64,000 bases of DNA from Ministeria vibrans ATCC 50519. Taxonomy: Eukaryota; Protista; Filasterea. Positions 12,302 to 47,083 of the stretch are shown in pieces. The notes under the pieces were generated by a model. The model worked only from the letters and a program-made list of their open reading frames with translations, had not been told where the DNA came from and ran no database searches. The position numbers and the translations under genes were made by a program. Every line of letters begins with the position of its first letter. Position 1 is the stretch's first letter. Where the stretch lies: NCBI GenBank assembly GCA_943704425.1, contig CALSCP010001890.1:78468-142467 (forward strand). Direction: 5' to 3'.

Positions 12302-15300
12302 CGAAAGTGATAGAAACAAAGTGATAGAAACAAAGTGATAGAAACAAAGTGATAGAAACAAAGTGATAGAAACAAAGTGATAGAAACAAAGTGATAGAAA
12401 CAAAGTGATAGAGAGAGAGTGAAAAAATGAGAAGCGGTGTCAATCGAGAATCCCTTTGCTTCAAAATCATCACAACAAGATGACTTACACAACTTTGCTT
12501 TGACCATCAGATGAAGCAAAAATGAGGCAGTTACGGGCGGCAAGATCGCGATGGACGAATCCTTTGGCGACGAGACAGGAGCAGGCACTAGCCACCTGCA
12601 GTGCAATGTTGTACTTGTCCGTGAGTTGCAGCTGAGGCCCGACAAAGCGCAGGAACTGCAGTAGGTCGCACTCGGCGCGCTCAAGCACAAGACGCCAGTC
12701 GCGCGGGTCCGTGCCTGCCGTCATCTTGCCGAGCATGGAGACCACATGTGGGTGCTGCACCTGCTCCAGCAGCTCGACCTCCTTGCGGAAGGATCGTCGC
12801 TCCTGATCACCCGTGCCCCGCAGCATCTTGATCGCCACCGGCATTTGCTGGCCGTCGGCCAGCAGCAGGTGACCCTCACACACATTGCCAAAGTTGCCCG
12901 AGCCAATGGCGTCTCCACAGAAAATACTTGAGCTGGGAATCTCACCCGACGACACATAGCCACTCTGTGAGTTGGGCGCCGCAATAGGCAAATAAAACTC
13001 GCTGGTGGTGCCGTAGATTCCATCGGCGTAGGGAGACGTGTCGGCACGCTCAGCATTGCCACTAAGCGCCGTGAGTGGCTCATACGAATCCACGTCGCAA
13101 ATGCTGTCGTAGACATCGTTTGGCGTCTCATAGTGCCCCTCCTCCTGCACAAGAGCCCCTGCCGCCTCGGCCATCCCTGCCGCATCCTCGCGTGTCTCTG
13201 CCGCGTCGTAGACTTGCGTCTCCTCGTCCGCCTGGTCGTACACTTGCGTCTCCTCGCCGTCCCTGCGTGCCTCTACCTCGTCGTACAGAAGTCCGTCCAT
13301 GTCGGCCATGACGGCCTCAGCAGTCGTATACAACTCATCGTCGTTGGAGTTGTCGTTGTCACCGGTGATCAGGTCGCCTGCGTCATCCAGCGCAGCAGCA
13401 GCCAGCACCGCTTCCGCCGTGGCGTCCAGCTCAATATGTTCGTTGACACGACCGCCCTCGCGTTCCTCGAGAGGCAGGGGCAAGCTGAACGACGCACCCA
13501 TAGCCATTGAGGGACGCGTTGAGGTGGGCAGTGCGGCTGCGACGGGCGCCGACTCGACCACGGGCGAGTACATGTCGCCTTCAATGTCGTTGTCACGATA
13601 GTTGTCGAGCTCCGAGTAGACGTGACCGGGCGTGGCGACAAACGAGAGGCCGCGAGGATTCTGCAACGTACCACTGGCGTAGTCAGAGGGAGGCAGTGCG
13701 GGCGCAGATACGAATGCATCGGACTGCACCGGAGATAAAGACGTATCTGCGCCGGGTGCAGCAGAGGCACGCATGCGCGGTGGTTTCTTGGGCGCAGACA
13801 GAACAGCAGCGGCACGCATTGCCTCCGAGCTCTCGTACGTGGGATTGGCATTGGTCGAGGCAAACGAAGCAGTGAGATCCGAACCGGAACCGTTGCGTGC
13901 GCCATACGTCGAGTTGGTGTTGGTCTTAACGACGTTTCCGCCGCCCGAGCCATACGTTGAGTTGTCACAAATGGTATGTTGGCCAGCAGAGGCGTACAGG
14001 CCACTGTCGCGCTCGGCCGACACACCCGCAGAGCCATAGAGAGCGTTCTCTTTCACCGACGTGAACCCACTGGCGTACGTGTCGTTCTCGCGATCCTGCA
14101 CCATCCCCTGCGCTGAGCAGTACTGCGTGTCGCTCATCTCAAAATCACCTGTGTACGTCGATGGGCTCTGCATGCCATCCACCGACGGATTGCGCACGTA
14201 CTTGTCGCGCTGTCGACGACGGCGGCGCACCACCAACAGCAATAGCAACAATAACAGCACGAGCACAACCACCACAATGCCAATGATAAGGCCCATCGAA
14301 GAGGATCCAGAACCATTCCGCGCCGCTGAATTGGCATCATTCGGGGGCGCTACGACCAAAACCGTGCTGAAATGCGCGACTTGACCGACAGCCGTTCCGA
14401 GTTCTGCGCAGAGAGAATATGTTAATAAGGTTAGAGAAAAAAAAAAGGCATAATGATGAATGAAACAGCGCACCAAGATCAACAAGTACATCGGTGGCGT
14501 ACTCCCAGGCGGGGGCAGAAGCAGTGATGTCCGTCGTAAAGATCATGGCAAATCCGTCAGGATTGGCACTGAAAGGATCGTATGCAGACTGATTGAGATT
14601 GAGACGGACCTCGACAGGCGTATTGAAGGTGTGAGGAGAGGGAGAGAGGTCAAAGGTGAGTGACATGGGAAGCACGTCAGGAGGGAGAACACTCCCTGAC
14701 GGTGTACACGACTCCTTGGCGCTCACTGTAATGGACGAAGAGACTGCGTTGGTGGGAACCACAATGGAGATTGAGAATGTGGTGGGAGATTGAGCGCCGC
14801 TGGGGGTGGCCGCAAACGAAAACAGAGGAGGGTTGGTGCTGCACGATGGAACAAGTGAAGCTATCGCAGTCGTCTCTTGTGCGAGTACGTGTGTTGTCTG
14901 CGGGATAACTACAACGGTCGTCTCAGAAACAACGGTTGTCTCAGGAACAAAGAGAACGGTCGTTTCCGGGAGAGGAGCGGCTGTCGTCTCCATTGCACCC
15001 GCAGCAGCAGCTGTGGTCTCCGCTACTACTATTGTCGATGTAGTTTGCGCCACAGCTCCGCCCACACTGGTCATCACAGCCGCACTGGGACTGAACACAA
15101 CGACAAAAGTTCCCATCTCCATTACTGAACCGGAAAGAACTCCAGCGACAAGGGTCAGGTCAGTCGCCATTTGCCAGACGGGTGCAACGGGATCGCTCGT
15201 GTACAGGAGCGCAAAATCAGCGGCGCTGGCGCTGGAAGGGTTGAACACGCCCGACGTAGCATTGAGTGTGATAGAGACGGTTACCGCCTCAAGCCAGGTG

Positions 15301-42774: not shown

Positions 42775-43220
42775 CGCGAGGAGAAGAATGAAAGTTCACC
42801 GCACGAGCCAAAAGGGGAAAGTGACGCAGGCGGGCCAGCAACCGTGTGAGCTGCCACAGGGTAGTGTCCGCTAGGAATGGGAGTGCAGTCTTGCAGAGAG
42901 TGTGTAGGAACAAAAAATAAAGATTTAGAAAGAGAGACTGAGAGTCGAGAGAGTCGCGTGATATTTGGGAAGAATGGCTCGTGAGTCGTCTGTGAAGTCT
43001 CAAAAATGTCCAAGTTTGTCTTGACTCAAAATCCTTGTCAAGAAGAACGAAAGAAAGAAGTAGCAACACGAACTAACAGACAAGGGTAAATTGCATCATT
43101 CATACGCAACGCTTTTGAGTTTTGCGGTGGCGCGGTCGGCCATAGAAAGAAGAAAGTTTAGAGCGATTGGGAGTTGATATTGAATATGATTAAATATTAA
43201 TAATTTTTCTTTCATTCATT

Positions 43221-44328
43221 ATGGCCTTGGGAGAGAGCGATGTGACGGCTGAGATGAAAGCCAAGTGGGATAAGTATGGGGGATTGACGGACGAGGAGAC
43301 CAAAGCGCGGATAGAAAAGCTTTTGGCGGAGAGTGACGATCCCGAGAGTCGCAAGGTGTCACTGCCACAGACGGACTGTGTACGTGTGGGCGATGAGGCG
43401 CCTGATGCAGAGGCGCCTCTGTTCTTTCTGGGCGGCGACAGTGGCGAGGAAGAGCGATCGTTGAGTATGGGCGCACTTCTCGATGACATTCACGCTCAAG
43501 GCAAAGTGGCTCTTCTGAACTTTGGATCGGTAGGCACAGTGTATGTATGTGTGTGTGTGTGTGTGTGTGTGACTGTGTGTGGTATGTCATATGTATGCAT
43601 GTGTGGTGGTGGTGTAAAGAGGAGTGTAAAAGATGAGTCTAAATAATCAACAATAATAATAATAATAATAATAATACTTTTTGACCATCCACCACTTGTC
43701 TTAGTACACATGACCACCGTACCGGGCAAAGTTGGGGGACGTTGAGAAAACGGCCGCAGCGTTTGCCTCAAGCGTGTGCCTCATTCACATTTACATCATT
43801 GAGGCACACCCGTCCGACGGATGGAATCTTCCGGACAACACAGACTCGGGCGTGTGCTTTAGGCAGCCTAAAACTCTTAAACAGAGACTTAAGTAGGGTT
43901 CTATTCAAAATCCATCATTTTTTCTGTCCATCTATTCAAAATCCCCCATCTATTCAAAATCCCCCCATCTATTCAACTTAAGTACATAATATAAAAATGT
44001 ATTTGTTGGGGGATACTAACTATTGACTATGGCATGTTGGGCTGTGTGTCTCTGTGTGCAGTGTGGCACAGCAGTTTGTGCGGGCGAATAGAGTGACGTC
44101 GCGCGTGCTTGTCGATGACATGTCTAATCGTGTTGAAAACGCCTTTGAAGCGCGTCCCGAACGACTGTATGTCCTTCGCAATCGGACCATTCTCTACCGT
44201 TCTGGTGTTGGGTAATTTTTGATAAATTAGAAGAGTCGTTTAAAAAATCATACTCTTTACATGTTGTTTTTTTTAGACCTTATCAGTATTCTGTTCCAAA
44301 ATTGTGCGAATTTCTTGACACACTATAA
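43221..44328 (+). CDS. Iodothyronine deiodinase-like selenoprotein; exons 43221-43529, 43705-43892, 44062-44211, 44277-44328; Sec TGA at 43711-43713
   Basis: Spliced: GDEAPDA...LLNFGS|YT(TGA)PPYR...IYIIEAHPSDGW...RQPKTLKQRL...LVDDMSN...FEARPERLYVL...YRSGVG|PYQY. Confidence 0.92.
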
Positions 44329-44375
44329 TTTCGTTGCTAATAATTTATTATTATTATTATTATCAACTCTCGACC

Positions 44376-44452
44376 TTTTTCTCCGAGGATTCGATTGCTC
44401 CAAAGTTCACTTTTGATTGGAATGAGCAGATTTGATGATGAATAAAGAAAAA
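44376..44452 (+). promoter_or_regulatory. Candidate SECIS element with a non-canonical GGA/GA core
   Basis: AGGAT (44386-90), 11 nt, AAA (44402-04); TGCTC/GAGCA stem; TGAT (44436-39); lower helix TTTTTCT/AGAAAAA. Confidence 0.5.
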
Positions 44453-44551
44453 AAGAAGATGATAATAATAATAAAAATAATAATAATACTATAAAAATGA
44501 TTTGAGAGAGACACTTGAATAAGTGAGAGTTGATTGCATTGTATAACTGCT

Positions 44552-47083
<2,532 letters not shown>

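Follow-up and report, generated by a model that had tools for sequence, protein, structure and literature searches.

The window, i.e., the whole 64-kb stretch of DNA that was analysed, harbors a four-exon gene that is expressed and encodes a soluble protein of about 232 residues. We have hardly any doubt that this gene is real, expressed, and a member of the iodothyronine deiodinase family with its thioredoxin/peroxiredoxin-like fold (PF00837). Taken jointly, the data are explained, very probably, by a soluble selenoprotein of this family, in which the active-site selenocysteine (Sec) stems from a UGA codon that is recoded via a type-II SECIS with an AGGA core.

A reading of the locus made from the sequence alone (the sequence-only reading) had proposed four GT-AG-spliced exons and a TGA codon 6 nt behind an intron. 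Rereading of the sequence and the spliced contigs of four runs bore out this structure as well as the places of the quoted motifs. Exon 1 (43221..43529; all features of the gene are on the + strand) comprises 103 codons, starts with ATG, and encodes a hydrophilic N-terminal region and a beta-strand ending in VALLNFGS. Intron 1 (43530..43704) contains (TG)n and (AAT)n repeats. Exon 2 (43705..43892) encodes YT-UGA-PPY followed by IYIIEAHPSDGW and SGVCFRQPKTLKQRL, and the QPKTLKQR motif could be read from the sequence of this exon. The in-frame TGA, the predicted Sec codon, is located at 43711..43713 between FGSYT and PPY. Intron 2 (43893..44061, phase 2) is followed by exon 3 (44062..44211), which encodes ...VLVDDMSNRVENAFEARPERLYVLRNRTILYRSGV and harbors the motifs DDMSN and PERLYV. 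Behind intron 3 (44212..44276, phase 2), the coding part of exon 4 (44277..44328) encodes (G)PYQYSVPKLCEFLDTL, and the C-terminus reads ...GPYQYSVPKLCEFLDTL-TAA with the stop codon at 44326-28. All three introns are of the GT..AG type, and the frame closes with intron phases of 0, 2, and 2.

Exon-only contigs covering the gene were present in four public runs (X1, X5, X6, and X9) from four studies. We take these runs to be cDNA because the GT..AG introns were precisely removed; otherwise the run type is a guess. Intron 1 was spliced out in all four runs with a contig junction at 43528|43704, which equals 43529|43705 as one G is shared. The joint of intron 2 (43892|44062) was present in X1, X5, and X6, and that of intron 3 in all four runs at 44210|44276, i.e., 44211|44277 when the cut is moved by +1. 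An 877-nt contig of X5 extended from 43214 to 44332 across all four exons and the three junctions and continued for 167 nt beyond, and a contig of X1 extended 144 nt past 44332. Contigs of exon 1 started at 43214-43234 and ended at 43528/9. None of the spliced contigs of X1, X5, X6, and X9 showed a junction that removes the TGA, and this codon is kept in the mRNA. One X1 contig (43863-44091) retained intron 2, which may be due to unspliced pre-mRNA or DNA carry-over. In X9, a run labelled with another organism, a synonymous C>T exchange was present at 43815 within the EAHPSDGW codons 3' of the TGA.

An in-frame TAA (43191-93) precedes the ATG by 30 nt, residues 1-50 are hydrophilic, and 43214 is the start of the RNA contig. 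We concluded from the upstream stop and the hydrophilic N-terminus that the protein lacks the N-terminal transmembrane anchor typical of animal DIO1-3, in agreement with the sequence-only reading. The 3'UTR has an inferred minimum extent of 44329..44499, and its colinear arrangement was deduced from the lengths of the contigs only, because 44333-44501 was repeat-masked in the read alignment. It adjoins or overlaps the 3' end of an enolase mRNA; the two mRNAs are convergent, with 3' ends that meet or overlap in the region around 44480-44500.

Homology searches were performed with the exon pieces taken singly and never joined, and the piece behind the TGA was searched apart. The profile PF00837 (T4_deiodinase), proposed earlier as a check, matched the 59 residues after the TGA with 34.8 bits (E 1.4e-8) and the exon 3 piece with 27.5 bits (E 2.3e-6), the curated cut-off being 27 bits. 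When the genome was scanned with this profile, 34.7 and 28 bits were obtained at pieces of the gene, and a profile of homologues gave 80.4 and 52.7 bits on two pieces. Since PF00837 was significant on two separate exon pieces and the homologue profile scored as it did, the match is far beyond chance. The active-site turn G-S-x-T-[U/C]-P-P-[FY] is present as NFGS|YT-TGA-PPY, and the family-specific insertion E-A-H-x-x-D-G-W is present in IYIIEAHPSDGW, which aligned to residues 197-207 of Dio3.

An exhaustive HMMER search revealed 77 relatives at E<=0.001. Many of these are open reading frames that begin directly after the Sec position, as expected when UGA is taken as a stop by gene callers. 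Most of the relatives are metagenome proteins without a label. Those of full length were collinear with all four exon pieces, and the 3 residues missing between exon 1 and the post-TGA piece correspond to Y-T-[C/U], which is Y-T-C in bacterial forms. The best labelled relative was a Vermamoeba transcript with 61% identity over the exon-2 piece. Exon 1 aligned with the N-terminal halves of P0002 and P0004, an orthologue and an orthologue-like protein, and of bacterial homologues. The full-length product was absent from the protein collections searched, and a protein homology search with P0002 returned only two relatives. With exon 1 as query we found only a genomic open reading frame fragment (L053, on the metagenome scaffold ENA ERZ23497388) from a near-identical strain, which does not reach the 3'UTR. 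This genomic exon 1 is 98% identical with a single Asp-to-Glu change, and the organism or a close relative is therefore present in a metagenome of environmental or host origin.

Deiodinase-like proteins of bacteria (Sargasso Sea, PMC1088965; P0011, P0028, and P0055) have FGSYT[C/U]PPFR with Tyr at position -2, EAHP.DGW, QP.T..ER, and P.RLY in common with the protein described here and show 38-45% identity over exon 2. The bacterial forms mostly have Cys and often signal peptides, and their Sec forms carry a bacterial SECIS inside the open reading frame. In contrast, the gene in the window has introns, a 3'UTR of the poly(A) type, and a eukaryotic-style candidate SECIS. Vertebrate DIO1-3 (mouse Dio3, 4TR3/4TR4; Dio2, 9H48) are of the same fold family and share the Sec column and the Ser-x-Thr-Sec-Pro-Pro turn, but the protein encoded here is only about 40% identical, is without a membrane anchor, and has an omega-loop that is 3 residues longer. 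The sequence-only reading had pointed to Tyr in place of the Cys two residues before Sec. This Tyr is indeed present, but it is nothing special, as FGSYT[C/U]PPF is the motif commonly found in the deiodinase-like proteins of bacteria and protists. In these members, Tyr at -2 is the rule, as is Pro at the position of His219 of Dio3, and both residues are therefore marks of a subfamily and not an oddity of this gene.

The TGA at 43711-13 occupies the Sec/Cys column of the family, in which homologues have Cys. The first post-TGA piece aligned with mouse Dio3 (4tr3_A 58-112) from chain residue 58 on and also with Dio2. Judged by the numbering of Glu200, His202, Trp207, and His219, chain residue 58 is Pro171, and the residue after the TGA thus aligns with the one next to Sec170. 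The placement of the UGA at the Sec column was also confirmed by orthologue mRNAs. Metatranscriptome contigs L024-L027, which encode P0002, and L028/L029, which encode P0007, read NFGSYT-TGA-PP. The contigs L024-L027 are polyadenylated, and P0002 had been called with the TGA as Trp. Canonical SECIS are present in the short 3'UTRs of these mRNAs, with a GUGA core in L024-L027 and an AUGA core in L028/L029. Unlike the soluble protein described here, the orthologue of L028 has an N-terminal anchor. P0004 (Logan contig, 258 aa), which is soluble and orthologue-like, has Ser in place of Sec (NFGSYTSPTY) and represents either a Ser-form or a sequencing or calling artefact. Overall, it appears very likely that the UGA at 43711-13 is read as Sec.

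The genome (29.7 Mb in 2860 contigs) was searched for the components of Sec insertion. The tRNA-Sec, eEFSec, and SPS2, which the sequence-only reading had named for such a search, were all found. The tRNA-Sec gene (L001:1501-1597; G000:C2383:9718-9814) scored 55.3 bits with Infernal (cut-off 47) and has a CUUCAA anticodon loop. ARAGORN did not call this tRNA-Sec, although Infernal found it. The gene carries a 12-nt intron-like insertion immediately 3' of the UCA anticodon. The eEFSec gene (G000:C1964:5974-8886 (+), loci L046-L048) comprises the GTPase domain and showed matches to euk_SelB_III (34.3 bits) and eEFSec_4th (55.1 bits). The top match of TIGR00475 (selB) was eEF1A and was discarded; domains III and IV of eEFSec were then located by PF21131 and PF21208. 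SPS2, itself with an in-frame TGA, and SepSecS are also present, and for PSTK the genome search gave only a weak partial match. The GPx, MsrA, SelO, and SPS2 genes carry canonical type-II SECIS, consisting of [A/G]UGA-C, a helix strand of 11-12 nt, AAA[G/U], and, on the 3' side, UGAU. We also observed a second, much more divergent deiodinase-like gene (G000:C2418:47396-47784 (-), loci L051/L052). One of its exons reads ...S-TGA-PPLR...VFVYIKE, a later exon VVLDSIDDEFEKTYSAWPTRY, and the profile matches are weak (E 0.03-0.08) but collinear. The SECIS scanner detected no SECIS behind this second gene.

A pattern scan of 43000-46500 (+) revealed no SECIS with AUGA or GUGA core. The minimum free energy fold of the 3'UTR contained a candidate type-II SECIS with an AGGA core at 44376..44452 (+). 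A lower stem (44376-82/44446-52; U-rich/A-rich) is followed by an internal loop, and the predicted core A86-G87-G88-A89 (44386-89) lies opposite U-G-A-U (44436-39). Helix II (44391-44400/44424-35) has 10 bp and a 2-nt bulge. The apex consists of unpaired C-AAA (44401-04), a mini-stem of 5 bp (44405-10/44419-23), and an 8-nt loop (44411-18). The flanks of helix II, A-G-G-A-U (44386-90) and U-G-A-U, permit U.U, A.G, G.A, and G.U pairs. We infer that AGGA/UGAU stands in place of AUGA/UGAU, so that the tandem G.A/A.G pairs are retained and U.U is changed to G.U. The complementary microsatellites (AUU)n (44345-65) and (AAU)n (44460-86) form an AU stem of 20 bp or more around the candidate and appear to serve as "helix I" of the SECIS-like element. 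The sole AATAAA of the 3'UTR (44441-46) sits in the 3' internal loop of the fold.

The spacing of the candidate (core N plus 11 nt to the AAA; AAA at +13), the AAAG, and the 3' UGAU are identical to those of the GPx and SelO SECIS of the genome, and the spacing and the UGAU are also common with the MsrA and SPS2 SECIS. The helix II/AA(A)/mini-stem arrangement agrees with type-II SECIS (about 10-13 bp; AAA 11-13 nt after the core). Type-II SECIS follow the consensus UGAN (5' strand) and KGAW (3' strand), with a nearly invariant core U (PMC3753652). The 3' strand of the candidate (UGAU) fits KGAW, whereas the 5' strand (GGAU, with U changed to G) does not fit UGAN.

A widened scanner accepted AUGA, GUGA, AGGA, or GGGA cores, its thresholds and core set having been fixed after the candidate had been seen. 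In both strands of the window (128 kb), the candidate was the only match with an A/GGGA core. Dinucleotide shuffles matched in 8 of 3000 cases for the whole UTR and in 12 of 3000 cases for its central part. Looser NGGA cores gave about one loose match per 15 kb in GC-rich gene loci, and a search behind the sure selenoprotein genes of the genome revealed no further SECIS with a GGA core. With -8.1 kcal, four G.U pairs, and a bulge, helix II is weak. The excerpts 44366-44460 (z +1.8) and 44379-44431 (z +0.8) showed no energetic signal and were no better than shuffles, and the SECIS architecture was seen only in the fold of the whole UTR (z -1.4). A crude covariance model (R1) derived from four true SECIS yielded no more than noise (E>1) in the window and did not recover the candidate, but this result counts neither way because MAFFT aligned only 6 pairs consistently. 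Rfam detected no SECIS in 43000-45000 or 44320-44620, and RF00031 also found nothing genome-wide. This carries no weight, since the obvious SECIS of GPx and SPS2 in the same genome also escape Rfam. The first helix scanners, which required UGA and an uninterrupted helix, missed the candidate as well. Because of the post hoc thresholds, the loose-core matches, the weak helix II, the unremarkable excerpts, and the miss by the model, we regard the 3'UTR fold with the AGGA core as no more than a probable SECIS.

Two further registers tried by hand were rejected: CCGA/GA due to a bulged core and AUGA(44422)/GA(44506) due to a 66-nt loop. Elsewhere in the window, at 14524-14590 (+), a SECIS-shaped hairpin with GUGA core, AAAG, and 3' UGAG (-16 kcal) was observed. 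It is probably due to chance, since it seemingly lies in coding DNA of the opposite strand.

The non-canonical core raises the question of whether the UGA simply terminates translation. In that case, the gene would encode a 105-residue N-terminal fragment or be a decaying former selenoprotein gene, which lost its SECIS by an AUGA-to-AGGA mutation. We consider this unlikely. A canonical SECIS was indeed not found, the nearly invariant core U is replaced, and the candidate hairpin is thermodynamically weak. However, the three exons behind the TGA keep the frame, the splice phases, and every motif of the family, a conservation that the sequence-only reading had asked for, and the one variant 3' of the TGA is synonymous. 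The mRNA was assembled in four studies, although a stop before two exon junctions should invite nonsense-mediated decay. Moreover, the SECIS architecture is intact but for one base and shows the exact spacing of the other SECIS of the genome. Furthermore, Toxoplasma and Neospora possess SECIS with a GGGA core, in which G takes the place of the U of AUGA and the tandem G.A pairs persist, as is the case here. Novoselov et al. (2007, in PNAS) reportedly found the GGGA-core SECIS to be functional in Toxoplasma. The core in the window is AGGA and not GGGA, the lineage is unrelated, and the candidate here is a predicted element.

A parallel in terms of the protein is didA of Dictyostelium discoideum (Lobanov et al. 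2007, PMC2375036), which is likewise a Sec-containing deiodinase homologue of a unicellular eukaryote without thyroid hormone. Its SECIS is of type II with an unpaired AAA, as is the candidate. Compared by description, the Dictyostelium SECIS has a normal core preceded by UGUA and a very long mini-stem, whereas the core here is AGGA.

As another alternative, the UGA may be subject to read-through in which near-cognate decoding inserts Cys, Trp, or Arg in place of Sec, which would yield a full-length protein free of selenium. The non-canonical SECIS would be in line with this, as would the Ser of P0004, which indicates that the fold tolerates other residues at the Sec position. Such read-through is normally inefficient, however, the genome harbors the Sec machinery and other SECIS-bearing selenoprotein genes, and the TGA-containing orthologues carry proper SECIS. 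We therefore regard Sec-free read-through as very improbable. For Sec insertion, SBP2 and eEFSec would act on the type-II SECIS at 44376-44452 in the short 3'UTR and recode the UGA.

The alignment to Dio3 also bears on catalysis and substrate, for which the sequence-only reading had hypothesized an action on iodinated compounds. Exon 3 aligned with residues 241-274 of Dio3. Glu200, His202, and Trp207 of Dio3 are conserved, as is the ERLY...GP.Y motif. Since the Ser-x-Thr-Sec turn, the Glu and His of the EAH motif, the Trp of DGW, and ERLY...GP.Y are retained, the catalytic apparatus of the Dio3 type (PMC7506546) is present. In the aligned protein, Cys168 of Dio3 is replaced by Tyr, His219 by Pro, Cys239 by Ser, and Arg275 by Val. 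In Dio3, these four residues are involved in thyronine handling and turnover (PMC7506546). The lack of their conservation makes a thyronine unlikely, and, judged from the alignment, the substrate is probably not a thyronine.

By analogy to Dio3, the Ser-x-Thr-Sec turn and the Glu and His of EAHPSDGW would hold the selenolate, which would be located where helix alpha-1 begins. The selenolate would attack an electrophile, and the halogen of a halogenated phenolic compound is the most plausible target. A thiol would then reduce the oxidized selenium. Because both Dio3 cysteines are absent, this may be an external thiol or the Cys within the conserved loop G-V-C-F-x-Q-P. A loop Cys within the motif G-[VI]-C-x-x-Q-P is conserved in eukaryote-type members and would be a candidate for the resolving thiol. 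By the same analogy, Sec-dependent reduction of an electrophilic small molecule would be the most likely chemistry, with reductive dehalogenation of a halophenol as the leading guess.

It is a realistic possibility, if short of a likely one, that the encoded selenoprotein, although a member of this family, acts as a peroxiredoxin-like peroxidase or thiol/selenol oxidoreductase and not as a dehalogenase. One would not expect such organisms to have thyroid hormones, and for the bacterial deiodinase-like homologues a function in redox reactions was suggested (PMC1088965). The exchange of His219, Arg275, Cys168, and Cys239 is also consistent with such a role. In Dictyostelium, DIF dechlorination is not the task of the homologue, as a didA null mutant retains normal DIF dechlorinase activity (PMC3205185). 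On the other hand, the EAHPSDGW loop, which distinguishes deiodinases from plain peroxiredoxins, is fully conserved, and Sec is chemically suited to halogen-bond attack. We cautiously lean towards the AGGA hairpin being a working SECIS, a natural U-to-G variant of the quartet outside Apicomplexa, and the enzyme made with its help would be a soluble Sec-dependent dehalogenase with a natural organohalogen, not thyroid hormone, as its substrate.

Sec-containing deiodinase homologues outside animals were described for bacteria in 2005 (PMC1088965) and for Dictyostelium in 2007 (PMC2375036), and the gene is therefore less novel than the sequence-only reading had implied. It is a new member of the already known non-animal Sec deiodinase-like proteins, and the AGGA core of the SECIS is its sole departure from what is known. 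As ordinary gene callers miss the gene, its recognition is a correction to the annotation and raises the selenoprotein count of the organism by one. It also adds a data point on the spread of soluble SYTU-type deiodinase-like enzymes in eukaryotes without thyroid hormone. If the AGGA core works, it would provide an easy natural test of what SBP2 and eEFSec need in the quartet and would be a warning for pattern-based selenoprotein searches, since standard SECIS finders would miss some selenoproteins. The SBP2 of this lineage would then have to tolerate G.U in place of U.U, while the other SECIS of the organism are canonical.
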